A DNA stretch of 59,262 nt, taken from the NCBI RefSeq assembly GCF_000315625.1, contig NW_005434446.1, positions 1-59,262 of the forward strand, given 5' to 3'. This document shows positions 30,060 through 53,930 of the stretch, in pieces. Numbering within the stretch: the first letter of the stretch is position 1; every line of letters starts with the position of its first letter. The notes under the pieces are model-generated. The model worked only from the letters and a program-made list of their open reading frames with translations, did no database searches and was not told where the DNA came from. A program made the position numbers and the translations under genes. The DNA comes from Guillardia theta CCMP2712 (Eukaryota; Protista; Cryptophyta).

Positions 30060-30987
30060 CGTTCTCACAAGCCCGATCTGAGCCGCCCCGGACGTGATTC
30101 GCTGCATATGTGTAATACTAGTACCCCGCCATACCCTATAAAAAAACTGCACACAAAACACACACGCCCCTCTCCCCACCCTATACAGGACTCTACTCTT
30201 TGATGGCCTCGAAGTTCTTGCCCCAAAGGCTGTCCGCTATCGTTGCGTATATGTAATCCACACACGTTCTTTACTCCAACCCATACATTCACGCATATTT
30301 ATTTGTTCCGTACACAGGACATTTTGGTGGTCTCGAAGTTTGTGAGCGATTCATTGAAAGACTGCGTTCTCGCCATGCCGTTCTGAGCCGCCCCGGACGT
30401 AAATCGCTCCCCCCCAGGCTGTCCGGCGATTTGCTATTAGTTCCGTACACAGGACATTTTGGTGTTTGTGAGCGATTCATTGAAAGACTGCGTTCTCGCC
30501 ATGCCGTTCTGAGCCGCCCCGGACGTAAATCGCTCCCCCCCAGGCTGTCCGGCGATTTGCTATTAGTTCCGTACACAGGACATTTTGGTGTTTGTGAGCG
30601 ATTCATTGAAAGACTGCGTTCTCGCCATGCCGTTCTGAGCCGCCCCGGACGTAAATCGCTCCCCCCCAGGCTGTCCGCTGTCGTTGGATATGTGTAATAC
30701 TAGTACCCCGCCATACCCTATAAAAAAACTGCACACAAAACACACACGCCCCTCTCTCTCCCGTATAACAGTACAGGACTCTTTGTATCGTTGCGTATAT
30801 GTAATCCACACACGTTCTTTACTCCAACCCATACATTCACGCATACTTATTTGTTCCGTACACAGGACATTTTGGTGGTCTCGAAGTTTGTGAGCGATTC
30901 ATTGAAAGACTGCGTTCTCACCATGCCGTTCTGAGCCGCCCCGGACGTAAATCGCTCCCCCCCAGGCTGTCCGGCGATTTGCTATTA
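30060..30987. repeat. 126-bp tandem repeat within a larger ~550-600-bp-offset duplication at the island's right edge
   Basis: tgtgagcgattcattgaaagac at 30341, 30467, 30593 and ~30888. Confidence 0.9.
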
Positions 30988-31176
30988 TACGTGTTTTAAC
31001 TTTCTTACATCCTATTGAAAATCAATTGTATACTATAAATTTTTTATAAAATCGAATCGTTCTCACCGGCATGATTCGAGTCCCCTGCCTCCCTCCTTCA
31101 TTCGACTACCCCTACCCGCTATTTGCCTACATCCCCAAATCTCCACCTACCCCACCCTCTGTTCTCAACCTCCGCA

Positions 31177-34100
31177 ATGCCGTACAACTGCCGTGATTGC
31201 CAGGCAAGGAGCAGCTGCGATGAGATGCTGTTACCTTGAGTGACATGCTTGATGATGGAGATGTTTCCTTTGCTCCCCCGCATCTGATCCTTCCATCATT
31301 CAACTCCTTTCTTGGCGGCTCCTTCACTTCCTCCTAACACTTTTTTTTGACCTTCTGACTTGTGTGTCTCCAGATCGTGATCGAAAATGATACCAACGAC
31401 AGCACAAAATGCGTAATTTGAATAGCTTCCAGTAGGCGTCACCTGACTTTGAGTGTTTTACGTTCTGCCGTGAATTGCAATGTTGTTATTCGGAAGGCGG
31501 TAAGCATCAGTCTGTGCAGCATATGCTCAGGGAATGTTTCGCTGACATTGGTTTTGCTTCTTGTCTGTGTTTGGTGTCGGATGGATGGGTTGCTGGATCG
31601 GATAGGGGGTAAGTATCTTGATCAAAATATGCGGTCAGGGAACGATTAGACTGACATGTACTTTGCAATCTCTGTCGTTGCTGCTCGGACGGATTGAACT
31701 TGGGCCTGGTAGCATGTAAGTTATGATTATGAAATATGCGGTCAGGGGACGATATGGCTGACATGCATCTTGCAAATCTTATCGATTACTGCTCGGATGG
31801 ACTGTCGATGATGCTGGATAGTGGGTGAGTGACGAATATGTACCATGCGATCAGGGAACGATTGGCTGACATTTCGTTTTGCAATCTCTGTTGTTTCTGG
31901 TTGAATGGATGAAATTTGGGCTTGATAGTTTGTAAGTAGCATATGCTATGATGCGGTCAGAGGATGATTGGACTGACATTTTCTTTTGTGTATATGTCGG
32001 TATTTGCTCGAATGTACTGTGGATGGCGCGGTATAGTCGGTAAGTGACGATGATGAAAGATGTGGTCAGGGGATGATTGGACTGACATGTATTTTGCAAA
32101 TTCCTGGTTTTTCCTTGCTTGCATGGATTAAATTCGTCTTCATAGGAAGTAAGTGTCATATCATATGATGCGGTCAGGGAACGATAGACTGACATGTATT
32201 TTGCAAATTCCTGGTTTTTCCTTGCTTGCATGGATTAAATTCACCTTCGTAGCACGTAAGTGTCATATCATAATGATGCGCTCAGGGGACGATAGACTGA
32301 CATGTATTTTGCAAATTCCTGGTTTTTCCTTGCTTGCATGGATAAAATTCGCCTTCGTAGTTCGTAAGTGTCATGTCATATGATGTGCTCAGGGATCGAT
32401 TGGGCTGACATTCTTCGTTTGTTTCTCGGTTTCTCATTGGTTGGGATGTTGATTTGTCCGGACAGTCGGTAAGTGATGATTATGAAACATGCGGTCAGGG
32501 GACGATTTGACTGACATGCAATTTGCAATTTGATCGGTTATTGCTTGGATGGATGAAACTTGGGCCTGATAGTATGTAAGTGACGCTTATGAAACATGCT
32601 CTCAGGGAATAATTGGACTGACGTCTGTTTTGCAAATTCCTGGTTTTTCATTGTTTGCATGGATTAAATTCGTCTTTGTAGAAAGTAAGTGTCATATCAT
32701 ATGATGCGGTCAGGGAAAGATTGGCTGACATGTATTTCTGCAATCATGATGTTTTTTGGCTTGGACGAATTGGTGATGGGACTCGATAGCCGGTAAGTAT
32801 CTTGATTGAAACATGCGGTCAGGGGATGATTGGACTGAATTTGTTTTTCAAAATTCCTGGTTTTTCCTTGTTTCGTTCTTCATAGGGAGTAAGTGTCATA
32901 TCATATGATGTGCTCAGAGAATGATTGGCTGACATGTATTTTGCCATTCGGGTCTTTGCTGGCATGCTCTGCATTGCGGCTGTTTTTTATCTAGTGCTGC
33001 GTTTGCTACTACGACGATGAACCTGAAGATAAAAGGCAAGAACACATGTGCCGGCACTGCAAGGATCGACGTTCCTGCGTGCACAACCTTGAGCAAGATC
33101 TTGTATCGTCAAGACCCAGTAGGCAGGACGCCATCGCCAAGATCGAGAAGGTCCGCGAGCACGTCAACAACGTGGGGAAGCCCTTTGCCGAGAGACTGGA
33201 TCTAGTCAAGTGCCACTACATCTTCGGGATGCAAGAGATAGATACTTCTGCTGTCGAAGGAGTGAAGCAGCTCCTGTCGGGCGGGGAGCTCGGGAGCTGC
33301 TACAACAGAAAGAAGGGCACGCTCAACATGTCTTTGCAGACAGATAGGATGAAACGATATGTGATACGAGATCTGAGGATGAAGAGCCTGCCTCGCTGGA
33401 TCTCCAAGCTCGGCGTCGCTTTCAAAGTCATCGACGTGTCCGGTAACCCCAGCCTCTCCCGCCTTCCCTTGGACGAGCTCTGCAGCATGGCAAAGTCAAG
33501 ATGGTGGAACATGAGACCTAGTCTGCAGGAGGTCAAGTGTGAGAGCTGCGTCAGGCTGCAGCTGCCTCCCCCTGAGATCGCCAGTCAGGGAGGGGCAGCT
33601 GCTTTCACGTACCTGCAGAGTGTCAAGAGAGACAGCGAGGCGAACAAGCGGATCAACCTCATCCTCATAGGCAACGGAGAGGCAGGCAAGACGAGCGTGC
33701 TGAGAGCTCTGAGGTCAGACAAGGACAAGGCGGACAAGATCGAGGTAGACAGAAGGACGATCGGGATAGACCTGCACGAGTGGAAGCCTGAGGACGCTGA
33801 CGGGCTGACGTTTGACGTGATGGACTTCGGGGGGCAGCAGATCTACGCCAAGACGAACCAGTACTTCATCGTGAGGCGGGCCTTGTACCTGCTGGTGTGG
33901 AGCGTGAGGGCGAAGCGAGACAAGGAGAGCAACGAGGATGGAGGGGAAGGCATGGAGGAGCTGAAGAAGATGATCTCTACATGGCTGCAAGCTACGCAAG
34001 CGCGAGTGCCGGGAGCGAGCGTGTTGCTCGTAGTAACGCACATTGATCTTGCCGGGGAGAGCGAGGTGACGGATCAGTGTGAGGAGGTGAAGGCATGTGT

Positions 34101-37098
34101 GGAAGAGGAGCTGAAGAAGATGGCAGAGGAAAACGATGAGAACATCCTGCCGTTACATGTGATCAACGGAGGCGAGAGCTTCCGGGTGAACTGTCTTGAG
34201 GGACAGGGAGTGGAGGAGCTGCGGCGATCTGTGTGTATGACTGCAAAAGAGCTGCTGTGGTGGGAGGAAAGAATCCCTGGACCTTATCTGAGACTGAGAG
34301 AGGCTGTGGAGAAGCGAAAGTCGGGGTCTGTCTCGTACGTCAAGGTAGAGGAGTACAAGGAGATGTTGAGAGAGTCAGGGGTCAACGAGAAAGAGCACAA
34401 GGTGGTGACAAGCTTCTTGCACGACATGGGCGTGCTCAAGTACTTTGGTCATGAGCTGAGTGCCGATGAAAGCAAGAAAGACCAAGGCAAGTACTCCGTC
34501 GAGGACACGGTCTTCATCGATCCCGTGTGGATGATCGACGTGTTCAAGGGCGTGATGCGACATGACTGGGAGCATCTGCTCGACTTCTTCCAGCTGGACC
34601 CAACCAAGTCCAAGAAGACGAAGAAGCTGCTGCACCTGGGTATCATAGACGAGGACATGTTGGAGTACTTGTGGCCCCAGCAAGGTAGGGACTTCTGGCG
34701 CAATGCGAAGACAGACAAGACATCAAGATCGAAAGAGGTAGGCTTTATCAAGAGCCATGTGGAGGTGCAGGAGGCGGTGGCTCTGCTTCGGGGCTGCGAT
34801 CTGGCGCACTTCCTGAGCGTGGGCATGAAGGACTTGAAGGATACAGACAACAAGAGCAGAGAGCTGCTGTGTCCCGGCATCATCCCGCCGTTCACGCATG
34901 AGCACAAGCGAGCAGTGACGGACAAGGACAAGCAGTCTCTGTGCGCATCTGTCGAGTGCGAGTACAACATCTTCCCCGCAGGCTTCATCGACAGGCTGGT
35001 CGTGCTGTGCGCTGCTCGACACTTTGAGGTAGACTGCAGCGGCTCTATGGCGGTGATGAAGGGCTGGGGCCGAACGCTGCTGGTGAGATGGCGAGAAGAC
35101 AATGACAAGCACGTGCTGAGAGCTGATGCGTCGACGAGGCAGCAGATCGAGAACTTGCAAGAGGACTTGAGGCGACTCGAGGCATTCTTCCCGGGGATGA
35201 AGCGAAGGAGAAGCGACGAAGAGAGCTCAGGCAAACAGGCCGTGCAGGTAGGGATCTTCACGCAAGGAGAGAGGTCAAGAGCATGTGGGCTGGATATTGA
35301 AAGAAAGTTGAAGGAGCTTTACAAGGCAGAGAACCTCCCTCTAGGTCTTACTTGTCAGATTCATCCGTGTGACGAACGTGGAGGTGCTGTTGATGAATGT
35401 CTCGTGAACATCTTGTGTATATCGACGGAGTGTGTTGATGAGCATGGAGCCATGCAAGGAGAAAGTAGCTTCAGCAAGCTATGGAACAGATTGACAACGA
35501 GCAAAGCAATTATCATCCCCGTCGTATTGACAGACTACTACGACAAGCAGATCAAGCCGAGGAACAGGTTCAACCATTGGTGGCCGCAGGAGATACAAGG
35601 GATGGAGCGATACCGGATCTTTCACGAGTACAAGAAGCAAGATGAAGTATCGAATGATGAATTATCGAAAGACAAAGTATCCGTATATGAAAAATCTATG
35701 CAAACATTGTACGACGGCGTCATCAAGAAGCTGCATCAGGGACGAGGAAGCTTCGAAGACTTGTACGAGGTCACCAGTCAGAACGAGCTTCTGTGCCAAG
35801 CTTGCTTGCATGATAGGTCTGAGTCTCCACCTGCCTCACAAGGCGATCGAGTCGTGGGCAGGTTTGATTTGTCGAAGATCAAGGAAGCGCTAGAAGGAGA
35901 AACCAAGGGTATGACGACATCCATTCAGCAAGGGTTGGAGCAAGAAGATGTCATAAAACACAAGATTATGATCAAAGCAATCACTTGCACAAGGGGTCAT
36001 ACGACAACCGTGAAGGAGGTGCTGGCGTTCAATGGCTCGAGCTCCCCGTGTCCGTCTTGCTTGAAGGACAAGAGAGTCCCGCACTTCTTCAGCCGACCCA
36101 CGTGCTTGAGCATGCTCGCTCGTGACCTGACGGCTAAGATTTACTGCGATCAATGTCAGAGGGAGGTGGACGTGCTGGACGTCACGCCGCCGCAGGTGTT
36201 CTTGAGCTACCAGTGGGGGCACGACAACTCGACGCAGAAGATGGTGAGGGATGTGAAGCGGGGGATCGAGGAGCAGACGAGCCTGCAGTGCTGGTTCGAC
36301 GTGGAGGGAGGGATCAACCCCGGGGAAGATCACATGCAGAAGATGGAGCAGGGAGTGTCTCGCTGCGAGGTGTTTGTGGTCTTTATGAGCGACAAGTACG
36401 TCAAGAGCGCCAACTGCAGGAGGGAGTTTGCTCGGGCGTGTGAGGCAGGGAAGTACATCATCCCTGTGCTGGTGCCGGTGCTGTTTCAAGAAGACAAGGC
36501 GAAGTCAGAGTCAGGCTGGAAGGGCGGCAACGGGGATGAAGACTGGTGGAAGAGGATCGCTGATATCGAGGGAAGCGAAGGAGCTGGGCAAGAGGTCAAG
36601 GTCGACTGGAAGTATCTCGCGTCATTCCCGAGGACTTTGAGGCTTCAAGCTGAGGTGCAAGGAGCAGAGGTGCGGGTGAGGGCAGGGCTGAAGGAGCTGG
36701 TGGCGGCTGTGCAGGCACGAGTTTACAGGGGAAGCGTGGTCTGGCACGAAACCATCGCAGACTCTTGTTCTAAGACACCTGAGAAGAAGGGACAGGTACA
36801 CGGAGATCGTGAACTGGGGAGCTCGCGGGGGGAGGAGGTAGATCGTAGGAAGAAAGAGCAGCTGGTAGAAGGGCTGGGAACAAAGGAGGCACTAGGCTCT
36901 GGGGGCGCACAAGAGGCGGAGCTTGCGGAGGCAAGGAGGGAGGCGGAGCGGGCAGAGACCTCGGGCACCAAGGGTCAGGGAGAGAGGAAGAGCTGGGAAA
37001 GCGCTGCTAGGGGAGGTGAGGGTGAGATTGACAAGAGGAGTCTCCAAGGGCGTCAGAGGGAGACGGTGAAGACCTCAGCTTGTTGTGTCGTGAGTTAG
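31177..37098 (+). CDS. ROCO protein: Cys/His-rich N-terminus, short LRR, Roc GTPase, COR, Zn motifs, TIR, CaaX; predicted ~1403 aa (exons 31177-31203, 31374-31412, 14 microexons, 32995-37098)
   Basis: IDVSGNPSLSRLP...PPPEIASQG; GNGEAGKTS; TIGID; DFGGQ; VVTHID; COR FLHDMG...VFIDPVW; TIR VFLSYQWG...CWFD...CRREF; ends CCVVS. The 5' exon model comes from splice signals and phase only. Confidence 0.88.
31497..32888 (+). other. Array of 14 three-nucleotide microexons separated by homologous ~93-106-nt introns
   Basis: AG-NNN-GTRAG at 31497, 31606, 31713, 31822, 31929, 32037, 32146, 32253, 32361, 32466, 32573, 32682, 32790 and 32886, with a CTGAC-type branch motif in every intron. Confidence 0.85.
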
Positions 37099-37186
37099 TC
37101 AGACGACCATGCTGATGGGACGTTAGGTAGCGGTTACAGCTTGATAAACATAGTGCGAAGCAGAAGCCTCTTGTCTGACGACTACC

Positions 37187-37490
37187 CTGATGTGCTTGAG
37201 CAGAGGACGACTCTGATGTGCTCGAGTCGAGCAGAGGACGACTCTGATGTGCTTGAGCAGAGGACGACTCTCATGTGCTTGAGCAGAGGACGACTCTCAT
37301 GTGCTTGAGCAGAGGACGACTCTGATGTGCTTGAGCAGAGGTCGACTCTGATGTGCTTGAGCAGAGGACGACTCTGATGTGCTTGAGCAGAGGACGACTC
37401 TCATGTGCTTGAGCAGAGGACGACTCTGATGTGCTTGAGCAGAGGACGACTCTCATGTGCTTGAGCAGAGGTCGACTCTGATGTGCTTGA
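37187..37490. repeat. 26-bp minisatellite GAGCAGAGGACGACTCTSATGTGCTT (~11 copies)
   Basis: Directly visible, with no unique spacers. Confidence 0.93.
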
Positions 37491-38017
37491 TCTCTCCTCG
37501 CAGTCGCTAAGTCGAGGACAGTGTTTCCAAGAAACACAAGAATCAGAGTAACTCACACAACAAGAGTCGGCAAAGCAAGAGGAGATCGGATCGAGAGAAA
37601 GAGAAATGAGGACGGTCAGCGATAGTGGAACAGCAATAGCTGAGTTGTCGTGCTTGTCTCCTTGTCTTTCTCCTCTTGTCCTGTGTTTTCATCACAGCCC
37701 GAGGCCTGCGAGCTTAGCTTATATGGTGTTCATCTGCCAGCACTGTCACCTCACCCGAGACGTGAGAGGAGGGGAGGGAGGCAGGGAGGCAGGGAGGCAG
37801 GAAACAGGAGAAACAAAGGGAGGGAGGAGAGGGAAAGGCAGGAAGGGAAAGCAAGGAGGGAGGGAGGGGAGGTAGGAGGAAGGAGGAGGGAGGGAGGGAG
37901 GGGACGTGGGAGGAAGGGAGGGGGGTACGGGTGTACAGACCTTGATGTCAAGTTTCTTCTGCATGGAGGACGAGGACCAGGCAGAAGTAGCAGGAGAGAA
38001 GGAGGAGGAAGAGGAAA

Positions 38018-51948: not shown

Positions 51949-53930
51949 TCATGGACGTGGAAGATGCTTCGAGAGGTTCTGACTGAAGAAACTTCTCCAC
52001 TCCTCCTGCTGCTTTTCGTTGTACTCACACAGCAAGTCCGGAGCCTGCAGACTGTCAGCCCAACTTTCACCTACTCCCACCCACTCCCTACCTTGCAGAG
52101 CGTCGAGTCTATCTTTACATGCCCATCCCCGTCCGTCACGCACCTCCACCACGTGCTCTCCAGTTTCTGAGGATATGGTGAGGAGGGGACGAGAAGGAGG
52201 CGGGCAAGACCTCAAGGTGGATGCTGAGCAAGCGATTCTCTTCCACCGTCCAGAAGGAGCCCTCCACCTTGATTTTCTTGCGAGCAATGAGAGAAGCTGC
52301 GCCAGCAGAAACCTCACCTTCCACAGACGAGATTGGTTGAAGATGCTATCCCATCGCTTCTTTCCTCGCACCTTCACTGTGATCGCGTTGGGCTGTAAGT
52401 CGCACTTCACGTCCTCCTTGACGCTTCCTGCCATCCCGCGTGTCAAGTCCACCCAGTCGCCATCTCCCTCCACCTCTAGGGAGGACGATGGACACGTGCA
52501 GCTCTCCCAGCGTCTGCCCCCACGTGTAGCCCGGGCCGTGCGAGCCGTTCCGCTCGTTGGGCTCCGAACCGCCTTCAGGAGGAGGCTTGAGCGACAGCAG
52601 CCTCCCGTCCTCTCGTCCCTGTCGCCGGAAACTCTCCTCAAGCTCTCGCTTGTACTCCATGTACCTGACAGAGGAGCTGAGGGGAGGGGAGCGACAGGCT
52701 GCGAGTCACCTCTCGTACTCCGAGTAACGCGGGTGATGCGGGGGAAGAACCTTGGGGGGTCCAACCTTGCCGTGGCCTCGCTCTTCACACGGTCAACTAC
52801 ATGATCAGGAGGGAGCAGAAAACCTGCATGCTGCTGCCTCCTCGATGACTGAGACGGGGTTCGACTGACAGCCGCAGGGACCATGTCGAAGGTCGAGCCC
52901 ACTCGTTCTTCTATCGCTTCCCAATCAGATTCCTTGAGCCGGCTCCACTTGCTGAAATCAGTCTTCTTCCAGTCTCTGATTTCCTCGGCCACCCCCTGCC
53001 TCCTTATCTCATCTGACCCATGCTTCCTCGTCTCGCGCACGTCCCTCTCTCTCTCTGCTGCCTCAACTTTCGCCAGCCTGCAATGCTCAGGCACCTTTCT
53101 CTCTCCTCGAATCAACTCGAGGACTGCATGGTGGTTGAACAACTTCGCTACCTCCCCCGCAGCTCTTCCTTCTTCGTTCTTGATGCCCGGGTCTGCATCG
53201 TTTGCCAGCAGCAGCATGACACACTCCTCGTTCCCATCCACTGCAGCGAGGTACAGCGGCGTCCTCCCGTTCTTCGTCTGAGCATTCACATTGGAGCCCT
53301 GAGCGAGGAGGGACCTCAAGATGTCTGCCTTTCCATTCGCTGCCGCCTTATGCAATGCAGTCCATCCTTCCCTATCCGAGCAATCGACGCTCTCTGTCTT
53401 CGCCATACTCCTGTGCTCTCCCTCCTTCTGTTCTCTCTCTCCCTCCTTCTGTTCTCTCTCTCTCCCTCCTTCTGCTCTCACTCTCTCCCTCCTTCTGCTC
53501 TCACTCTCTCCCTCCTTCTGTTCTCTCTCTCCCTCCTTCTTTTCTCTCTCTCTCCCTCCTTCTGTTCTCACTCTCTCCCTCCTTCTGTTCTCTCTCTCTC
53601 TCTCCTTCTTTTCTCACTCTCTCTCTTCTTCTGTTCTCACTCTCTCCCTCCTTCTGTTCTCACTCTCTCCCTCCTTCTGTTCTCACTCTCTCCCTCCTTC
53701 TGTTCTCACTCTCTCCCTCCTTCTTTTCTCTCTCTCTCCCTCCTTCTGTTCTCACTCTCTCCCTCCTTCTGTTCTCACTCTCTCCCTCCTTCTGTTCTCA
53801 CTCTCTCCCTCCTTCTGTTCTCACTCTCTCCCTCCTTCTGTTCTCACTCTCTCCCTCCTTCTGTTCTCACTCTCTCCCTCCTTCTGTTCTCACTCTCTCC
53901 CTCCTTCTGTTCTCACCCTCCCCTCGCCAT
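51949..53930 (-). CDS. Ankyrin-repeat plus NudC-like CS domain protein (multi-exon)
   Basis: GWTALHKAAANG and GRTPLYLAAVDG; NGSHGPGYTWGQTLGELHVSI...SFWTVEE. A short first exon at 53930 splices in frame across the minisatellite. Confidence 0.8.
53415..53915. repeat. CT-rich minisatellite (TTCTCACTCTCTCCCTCCTTCTG-type) filling an intron
   Basis: Directly visible; bounded by GTGAGA...CACAG on the minus strand. Confidence 0.9.

Follow-up and report, generated by a model that had tools for sequence, protein, structure and literature searches.

Tandem arrays of single-codon exons at the 5′ end of a ROCO-TIR gene and related genes of Guillardia theta

Can an exon consist of a single codon, and can such exons follow one another in a row, separated by introns that are copies of each other? 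This question is raised by a gene on contig NW_005434446.1 of the cryptophyte alga Guillardia theta CCMP2712 (87-Mb genome assembly), of which a stretch of 59,262 nt, hereafter the window, was analyzed. The gene encodes a ROCO-TIR protein, and its 5′ region carries a tandem repeat with a period of 107-108 nt (Tandem Repeats Finder). A pattern scan of the window finds 14 AG-NNN-GT[AG]AG sites in this repeat on the + strand, spanning 31495-32893 and spaced 96-109 nt apart, while the remaining ~58 kb holds only 8 other + strand matches, none of them periodic. All 14 triplets are bounded by an acceptor AG and a donor GT[AG]AG; they lie exactly where the original prediction, made from the sequence alone, had placed them, and none is a stop codon. 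To our knowledge, 3-nt exons have been known only as rare, isolated curiosities, and the spliceosome is generally thought to need special help with exons of this length. The reading that we favour, and hold to be probable, is that the triplets are genuine spliceosomal one-codon exons in tandem arrays, which encode a variable segment of a cysteine-framed N-terminal module.

Upon translation, exon 1, exon 2 (31374-31412) and the exon that starts at 32995 are all in phase with the ROCO open reading frame (ORF), in agreement with the original prediction. With every triplet included, the gene reads MPYNCRDCQ / IVIENDTNDSTKC / A G H W F S E H F S Y K P G / CCVCYYDDEPEDKRQEHMCRHC..., and the conceptual peptides at the array borders are C-AGHWFSEHFSYK on the exon 2 side and PG-CCVCYYDDEPEDK on the last-exon side. 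In Pfam, the ORF at 33046-37098 contains Roc (1.8e-12), COR-A (1e-9), COR-B (1e-3, which is below the curated cut-off) and TIR_2, i.e. the Roc GTPase followed by a COR domain that marks a ROCO protein. The microexons supply 14 of about 1,400 codons, the remainder coming mainly from one 4.1-kb exon. In an alignment of the 15 array introns, the first (31413-31496) is a shorter, diverged copy of the repeat unit. The repeat introns display, in order, GTAAGT (GTGAGT in one), ATGCGGTCAGGGAACGAT, CTGACAT, a T-rich tail and (T/C)AG; they contain TCAGGG, have CTGAC ~60 nt before the 3′ end, and their tail is free of AG.

Evidence for splicing comes from RNA-derived contigs; sequences of four runs (including X1, X2 and X17) were compared with window positions 30800-33600. 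X1 record 2 (291 nt) follows the genomic order through 13 of the 14 microexons and lacks 11 introns, each cut out at the bases predicted; it decodes as exon 2, GCG GGG CAT TGG, intron 5, TTT TCG GAA CAC TTC TCG TAT, intron 12, AAA and CCG. Its letters 1-19 equal window 31395-31413 and the next eight are CGGGGCAT; then follow 31822-31931 (TGG, intron 5, TTT), the fourteen letters TCGGAACACTTCTC, and 32572-32684 (G, TAT, intron 12, AAA), from where a 105-nt GT..AG skip leads to 32790. The same skip (32684→32790) is confirmed by X2. X1 record 4 covers the end of the array, namely: CCG, a retained intron 14, GGA, and a 106-nt GT..AG skip to 32995. GGA is joined to TGCTGCGTT both in this record and in a loose end of X2, where the letters after 32888 are TGCTGCGTTTGCTACT, i.e. 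the start of the last exon. At the other side of the array, the joint of exons 1 and 2 appears in an X2 contig as 31199→31370, which, given four ambiguous letters, equals 31203→31374. Triplets joined to neighbouring exons are therefore present in both X1 and X2. The raw RNA reads of X17 were too few for use, with only 5 on the window stretch.

Paralogs elsewhere in the genome show the same behaviour. A loose end from L032 (contig C23) reads ACT GGA ACG CAT CCG TCG GTT and then GCTACTTTT, which is seven microexons followed by an 87-nt mid exon. The loose end from L035 (C149) reads TGCTAC GAA GGA TTA CGA GGA TCG CGG CGA and continues into the last exon; together with the aligned ATC TAC, it represents ten single-codon exons fully spliced in one contig. 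Further strings were obtained from L036 (C206; GGG AAA TAT TGCTGC gtaag...) and L043 (C221; CGG CGG AAT GAT GGG TAT CTG). The spliced strings are absent from the fetched loci and from the whole 87-Mb assembly, and therefore exist only as RNA products. The junction search that had been proposed together with the original prediction thus bears out its central claim, that the triplets are real exons spliced individually.

That prediction had also envisaged up to 2^14 isoforms, with different cells or conditions including different subsets of the 14 codons. Such combinatorial alternative splicing is, in our judgement, improbable. Any subset would indeed preserve the frame, as is evident directly from the sequence, and splicing efficiency is unequal: deviant donor or branch motifs are found in those introns that the X1 contigs retain, namely a GTGAGT donor in intron 5, CTGACGT in intron 12, and CTGAAT with a length of 93 nt in intron 14. 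Removal is also not strictly 5′ to 3′, since introns 5 and 12 are kept while later ones are gone. However, all strings recovered from the window and the four paralogs are in full genomic order, and none is skipped, although assembled contigs drop rare variants. Likewise, no joint connects non-adjacent microexons of one locus. A joint 31608→32798 (AAATATGTAAGTAA) was considered as exon skipping and rejected, as it is explained by L036, which contains the string GGG AAA TAT and has 84 bases identical to window intron 2.

Table 1. Features of the window gene, and gene types found downstream of the arrays
Feature	Position or loci	Strand	Evidence or remarks
Exon 1	31177..31203	+	ATG to CAG, encodes MPYNCRDCQ; sequence
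GC..AG intron, 170 nt	31204..31373	+	starts GCAAGG, ends CCAG; 170-nt skip, X2, depth 138.8
Exon 2, 39 nt, encodes IVIENDTNDSTKC	31374..31412	+	tail joined to GCG GGG CAT, X1 record 2
First array intron, 84 nt, GTAATT...AAG	31413..31496	+	removed in X1 record 2 (31413→31822)
Microexon 1, GCG (A)	31497..31499	+	X1 record 2
Microexon 2, GGG (G)	31606..31608	+	X1 record 2, within CGGGGCAT between 31413 and 31822
Microexon 3, CAT (H)	31713..31715	+	X1 record 2
Microexon 4, TGG (W)	31822..31824	+	X1 record 2; opens piece 31822-31931, directly after CAT
Microexon 5, TTT (F)	31929..31931	+	X1 record 2; then spliced string TCGGAACACTTCTC; upstream intron 5 retained
Microexon 6, TCG (S)	32037..32039	+	X1 record 2
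Microexon 7, GAA (E)	32146..32148	+	X1 record 2
Microexon 8, CAC (H)	32253..32255	+	X1 record 2
Microexon 9, TTC (F)	32361..32363	+	X1 record 2
Microexon 10, TCG (S)	32466..32468	+	X1 record 2; last G coincides with 32572
Microexon 11, TAT (Y)	32573..32575	+	X1 record 2, piece 32572-32684
Microexon 12, AAA (K)	32682..32684	+	joint 32684→32790, X1 and X2; upstream intron 12 retained in X1
Microexon 13, CCG (P)	32790..32792	+	target of joint 32684→32790, X1 and X2
Microexon 14, GGA (G)	32886..32888	+	joint 32888→32995 (X1 record 4) and X2 loose end
Fourteen homologous repeat introns (93-106 nt), with microexons 2-14 between	31500..32994	+	alignment, Tandem Repeats Finder
Last exon	32995..37098	+	Cys-rich start CCVCYYDD..., Roc, COR-A, COR-B, TIR_2, ends CCVVS and stop
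Roc-COR-TIR genes after arrays	window, L032, L035, L037, L038, L043, L047, truncated L033		
Tyr/Ser-Thr-kinase + metacaspase genes after arrays	L031, L034		
Kinase + RING gene after array	L036		
Kinase + PARP genes after arrays	L039, L044		
PAN-domain gene after array	L041		
No recognised domain after array	four loci		

How far does this arrangement extend beyond the window gene? Searching the genome with a 426-nt piece of the array gave 73 matches, spread over about 20 contigs. With a strict unit pattern (AG NNN GTRAGY ... TCAGRG ... CTGAC), 124 matches were obtained, compared with 2 for a reversed control, and nearly all of them lie in tandem arrays on the same ~20 contigs; among the 100 places listed, lone copies occur only on C33 and C92. 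The window and 18 fetched loci together hold 217 candidate single-codon exons in arrays of 3-21. The genome scan suggested by the original prediction thus yields about 20 loci with different codon strings. As anticipated, arrays precede ROCO-TIR paralogs; a restriction to ROCO/TIR genes does not hold, however, since kinase-metacaspase, kinase-RING and kinase-PARP genes carry them as well (Table 1). The products of the Roc-COR-TIR, kinase-metacaspase and kinase-PARP genes are about 1,100-1,400 aa long.

The exons around the arrays are conserved in frame: the exon 1 pattern MP[YWF][NK]CxxCQ is kept in 8 paralogs, the exon 2 pattern I[VPE][IVF].....[TD]S[TL][KR]C in 10, and both exons keep their cysteines across the different downstream architectures. 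After the array, TIR genes continue with CCVCYYDD..., whereas kinase genes have a 6-nt exon TGCTG[CT] (Cys-Cys) and then a 3-nt exon AAT. These two exons were found at L036:3200-3330 (C206), and also in L034, L039, L044, L046, L048 and L049. The introns flanking AAT are unrelated to the repeat unit; thus, single-codon exons also exist outside the repeat context. In several genes, two arrays are split by the 87-nt exon, which encodes ...CKIC...YCY. It follows from the conserved cysteines of exons 1 and 2, of the post-array sequence and of the mid exon that the variable segment always lies between conserved cysteines. The N-terminal module of the about 20 genes would then be built as CxxC ... 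C-[array]-CC.C ... CxxC, with the variable segment inserted between the cysteine motifs. The CxxC spacing suggests metal binding by this module. A Cys/His zinc-finger-like domain had been proposed from the window sequence: the CxxC cysteines are indeed conserved, and the label itself stays putative, a Pfam search with the mid exon and with the initial 62 or 212 residues of the last exon giving no family even at E<=5.

Some further members of the family deserve mention. L041 (G000:C21:783000-792999) holds two copies 3.5 kb apart, each a two-unit array (TAT, AAC) before PAN-domain ORFs; the unit has thus also reached a gene type without kinase or TIR. At L036:1780-1880 (C206), a mutation has turned the acceptor AAG of the first unit into ATG, and the microexon that follows is ATG as well; this copy may have an alternative start or be undergoing decay. 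Array loci lie within a few kb of contig ends on C23, C118, C146, C150, C206 and C308, and the family may thus be subtelomeric.

The triplets of the whole family display signs of coding constraint. None of the 217 is a stop codon, compared with 14.1 expected from position-specific base frequencies (P about 5e-7) and 10.2 under a uniform model. If units that share block family and codon are collapsed, there are 0 stops in 148, where 9.0 are expected (P about 9e-5). Exon length was determined by a length-neutral rule, in which the final GTRAG ahead of the TCAG...CTGA core is taken as donor, and as acceptor the AG that comes first at a distance of 20 nt or more past CTGA; by this rule, the exon is 3 nt long at 104 of 104 junctions. 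In contrast to the fixed exon length, the introns flanked by two microexons (n=170) vary in length between 89 and 118 nt, evenly spread over the three residues modulo 3. The encoded segment, which varies in both length and sequence, is biased in its amino acids, being rich in G, Y, R, A, N and D. Supported by the stop avoidance and by the in-frame conservation of the flanking exons, we infer that the array is translated in frame.

How could the spliceosome recognize exons of this size? Of the 170 array introns in the family, the donor is GTAAGT in 143 and the terminal letters are ATAG in 128. A median of 60 nt separates the CTGA[CT] motif from the intron 3′ end, and between this motif and the acceptor 148 of 157 introns are free of AG. 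Each ~105-nt repeat is thus a self-contained intron: after a GTAAGT donor come a G-run/TCAGGG, a branch-point-like CTGAC motif and a tail without AG, and the first AG serves as acceptor. Since no signal has to be supplied from outside the repeat, the spliceosome can excise the units one at a time by intron definition, exactly 3 nt being left behind each time. A 3-nt exon leaves no room for exon definition or exonic enhancers, and recognition must hence be by intron definition; U1 at the next donor would cover the whole exon and abut the previous acceptor. The conserved elements presumably used are the strong donor, the G-run ~30 nt downstream of it, the distal branch motif and the AG-exclusion zone, the last of which would ensure that the first AG serves as acceptor. 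G triplets are known to enhance the splicing of small introns. With more than 200 candidate one-codon exons in an 87-Mb genome, the repeat intron must carry everything that defines them. A GTCAG...CTGAC hairpin at the branch motif was considered but is not claimed, since 66 units have GTCAG as its upstream arm and 43 have CTCAG, and the other arm does not change to compensate.

Given introns that carry such conserved signals, it is the codons that vary most. Over all units, entropy is 1.84-1.95 bits at the three exonic positions, 0 at the flanking splice signals and 0.8-1.7 in much of the flanks. As a control for selection bias, pairs of units were picked on one flank only (<5% divergent) and the rest was measured: the other flank differs at 0.20-0.25 per site and the codon at 0.42-0.53. 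The largest block family consists of 33 blocks from 12 loci, aligned over ~60 nt upstream and 45 nt downstream, and carries 12 different codons. Its mean pairwise difference is 0.5-0.6 in the exonic columns vs. about 0.1 in the flanks, and the exonic columns are the most variable ones except for some columns between TCAGGG and CTGAC, which are less securely aligned. The GAA, CAC, TTC and AAA blocks of the window differ from one another at 6-15 of 84 flank sites and at 1-3 of 3 codon sites. The claim that the introns are mutual paralogs while the codons differ is therefore upheld by both the intron alignment and the block-family comparison. GCG is the first microexon in all nine arrays of the block family to which the window's first unit belongs. 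Two accounts would both fit these patterns, namely diversifying selection on the codons, or homogenisation or constraint of the introns combined with selection that maintains the differences between codons. Under either of them, the identity of the residue is what is free or driven to change.

Whole arrays also turn over quickly between gene copies. L032 (G000:C23:5000-14999) and L035 (G000:C149:88000-97999) are 99.5% identical over their 3-kb bodies and ~94% identical in their 5′ regions; over the bodies, the window is about 95% identical to L032, L035, L038 and L043. The L032 array has 8 microexons, the mid exon and 3 more, and the L035 array has 2 microexons, the mid exon and 10 more, with codons that differ from those of L032. 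The two are non-collinear, no block of at least 93% identity and 90 nt being found past the first unit. Accordingly, the array-coded peptides of near-identical TIR paralogs are unrelated: AGHWFSEHFSYKPG, ATGTHPSV...GGR, ...EGLRGSRRIY, AANDVYANY and AYRGILGDV. As judged from these comparisons, diversification of the array between gene copies, in the germline, is supported. Identical codons are not in excess at adjacent positions (9 of 170 pairs, with 9.8 expected), so that simple recent duplication of an adjacent unit does not predominate as a trace, and the pattern calls for exchange among arrays or for rapid change of the codons. The homologous introns would be suitable substrates for unequal recombination or conversion, which would be frame-neutral because each unit adds exactly one codon, whatever the length of its intron. 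Such recombination would reshuffle the segment without frameshifts, while the codons change faster than the introns. The fast turnover between paralogs is what would be expected under the unequal crossover first proposed for the window, by which single residues are added, deleted or swapped, recombination being its presumed mechanism.

Several points weigh against reading the arrays as translated and functionally variable. The fully spliced N-terminus of the window gene is not found in one contig; the best contig keeps two introns, at a depth of 4.9. It should also be noted that the runs are only presumed to be RNA, and that Logan contigs can be composite paths through paralogs. X2 depth rises from ~1,000 to ~10,000 some 60 nt into the last exon (from ~33056 onward), which could reflect many transcripts that start downstream of the array, or k-mers common to more highly expressed paralogs. 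The proteins closest to the window ORF are GUITHDRAFT_121310 (85%), _108245 and _116126 of G. theta CCMP2712, and Hanusia phi transcriptome proteins match it at 53-55%. Both the annotated models and the Hanusia proteins have their start at or close to an internal methionine (MCQHCKDRRS...; MC.HCK), and the arrays are hence unannotated. Protein searches with the full length and with the N-terminal 100 aa returned only models that start at or near this methionine and are uninformative on translation of the array-coded peptide, the case for which is made by stop avoidance and conservation rather than by peptide data. Splicing could itself account for part of the stop avoidance, because a TAG triplet would create a competing acceptor; the avoidance of TAA and TGA is without such an explanation. 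The hypervariability of the codons could partly reflect intron constraint or gene conversion rather than positive selection on the codons. Finally, no functional evidence ties the array genes to immunity.

Could the arrays serve expression rather than sequence? In a regulatory gate or timer, the frame opens only once all 15 short introns are gone, which would limit the output of dangerous TIR, caspase or PARP effectors, and the residues would be an unconstrained linker. Consistent with this, retention of an array intron brings an in-frame stop in 132 of 170 cases and shifts the frame in 111 of 170, the contigs readily show partially spliced forms, and the codons appear unconstrained beyond stop avoidance. 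A gate leaves unexplained, however, why the codon outpaces the flanking intron within young blocks, why the residues are biased to G, Y, R, N and D, and why the segment keeps a constant position between conserved cysteines. As the sole explanation we rate it quite improbable, and it is compatible with a translated variable segment rather than exclusive of it.

The start points of the annotated proteins raise a different possibility, in which the arrays are spliced but belong to an untranslated leader, translation begins at the methionine at 33046, and the triplets are without meaning for the protein. In its favour are the start of the annotated G. theta and Hanusia phi proteins at or near MC.HCK and the X2 depth, which past about 33056 greatly exceeds that over exons 1 and 2. 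A leader would have no reason to lack stops (0 in 217 triplets, or 148 collapsed, vs. 14 or 9 expected), to hold exon length at 3 nt, or to keep exons 1 and 2 and the CCVCYYDD stretch before the methionine in frame with their cysteines across paralogs; we regard it as very improbable. We give next to no credence to an intronic minisatellite, in which the repeat sits in one long intron (31413-32994) removed in a single step and the AG-NNN-GTAAG sites are passive: although Tandem Repeats Finder does report a 107-108-nt satellite, whose repeats would retain their internal spacing by descent, it is contradicted by the triplets joined to one another in RNA-derived contigs, by the contigs reporting no 31412→32995 joint, and by stop avoidance and a 3-nt length at 104 junctions despite intron indels.

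If the triplets are one-codon exons that encode a variable segment, as we favour, what could the segment do? Its product would be a variable loop on proteins whose bodies are typical of immune or cell-death effectors. TIR, metacaspase, PARP, Roc-COR and kinase domains are standard immune and cell-death parts in bacteria, plants and animals. That the loop sets the specificity of recognition or of partner binding is a tentative proposal, with the balance somewhat against it, and the pathogen sensor of the original prediction is suggested by domain content only. A stronger version, which we think unlikely, is a dedicated codon-cassette device, in which the homologous introns would promote the frequent gain, loss and exchange of residues, possibly also somatically or by regulated subset splicing, so as to provide an individualised repertoire of recognition loops on TIR, caspase, PARP and kinase effectors.

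Is there a precedent for such arrays? Literature searches on Guillardia with microexons or introners, and on tandem single-codon or 3-nt exons, found no such arrays described, their coverage being incomplete; this agrees with the expectation that no comparable array had been reported. The closest concept is found in the micro-exon genes (MEGs) of flatworms such as Schistosoma, which have tandem symmetric microexons of 3-81 bp between long, mutually unrelated introns of up to 5 kb, and which encode small secreted proteins with documented exon skipping, in a fast-evolving family thought to generate protein variation (PMC10526429; PMC4015677). Both systems place multiple-of-3 microexons in tandem within one gene of a fast-evolving family, and 3-bp exons occur in MEGs. 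In Guillardia, however, the exons are all one codon long, the introns are ~105-nt tandem paralogs, and the proteins are large, multidomain and of intracellular type. While most of a MEG coding sequence consists of such exons, only 14 of about 1,400 codons of the window gene (3-21 per array in the paralogs) come from microexons, the Guillardia contigs show no skipping (bearing in mind that contigs drop rare variants), and no MEG-related match was found.

Isolated 3-nt microexons are known from Drosophila hth (PMC7392893), RPS24 (PMC12207440) and plants (PMC8831610). They too consist of a single codon between canonical AG and GT and are often missed by annotation, but they are single, deeply conserved and fixed in sequence, whereas the Guillardia exons occur up to about 20 in a row, are hypervariable and lie between repeat introns.

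Recursive splicing offers a mechanistic parallel. Ratchet sites (AG/GTAAGT), which occur in long introns of Drosophila and vertebrates, contribute 0 nt to the mRNA or produce an exon that is later removed. In both cases a 3′ splice site abuts a strong GTAAGT donor and a long interval is removed stepwise, which is forced because the juxtaposed 3′ splice site and donor cannot be occupied independently. Guillardia differs in that 3 coding nt are kept at 104 of 104 junctions, the triplets are found in RNA, and removal is not strictly 5′ to 3′. Introner elements are transposon-derived, near-identical introns of algae and fungi. They resemble the arrays in that one genome holds many near-identical introns with their own splice signals; they are, however, dispersed singly in unrelated genes, while the Guillardia units are almost only tandem at about 20 loci. 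No terminal inverted repeats or target-site duplications are apparent in the alignments, no dedicated search having been made, and the count of identical adjacent codons (9/170 vs. 9.8 expected) likewise gives no sign of target duplication.

With regard to function, the closest analogue would be the shuffling of leucine-rich repeat (LRR) exons in brown-algal ROCO and NB-ARC-TPR genes, where the cassette is 24 residues long (PMC3341825; PMC11378527). Those genes are likewise algal candidate immune receptors with Roc-COR, and owe their diversity to the duplication and shuffling of frame-neutral cassettes bounded by similar introns; they differ in having a 24-residue LRR exon in a stramenopile, as opposed to one residue in a Cys-rich N-terminus in a cryptophyte. 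Snake venom phospholipase A2 (PLA2) and conotoxin genes display accelerated exon evolution next to conserved introns. Coding positions diverge faster than the adjacent intron there as well, but the units are whole exons of ordinary size that encode secreted toxins, and not single codons within repeat introns. Four features of the Guillardia system are without a described counterpart: arrays made of one-codon exons only, tandem paralogous introns, the codon as hypervariable core, and recurrence on several immune-type architectures.

In the repeat intron, nature provides a compact model of how minimal exons can be spliced by intron definition. Since gain or loss of a repeat would change the protein by one residue, the reading frame is decoupled from indels, which would represent a new way of building a hypervariable protein segment. 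The presence of arrays on immune-type bodies points to a possible, so far unexplored recognition system in cryptophyte algae, and the codon-cassette device, if true, would be a residue-resolution analogue of receptor diversification in a unicellular alga. On the practical side, the current gene models of the array family are all 5′-truncated, and standard aligners will miss the junctions.

Other repeats were noted in the window. A 126-nt tandem repeat of 2.7 copies with 100% identity occupies 30338-30677, ~500 nt upstream of the ATG, and AGTTTGTGAG has matches at 30337 and 30885, at or near this repeat. At 37100-37500, the same frame continued past the ORF stop repeats a motif, ...EDDSDVLEQRTTLMCLSRGRLSCA followed by a stop, at least 4 times, as part of either the 3′ untranslated region or a downstream repeat. 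Finally, the minus strand at 53486-53898 carries 15 copies of AGAGAGTGAG, mostly at 23-nt spacing with a few larger gaps, which form a separate short-period satellite.

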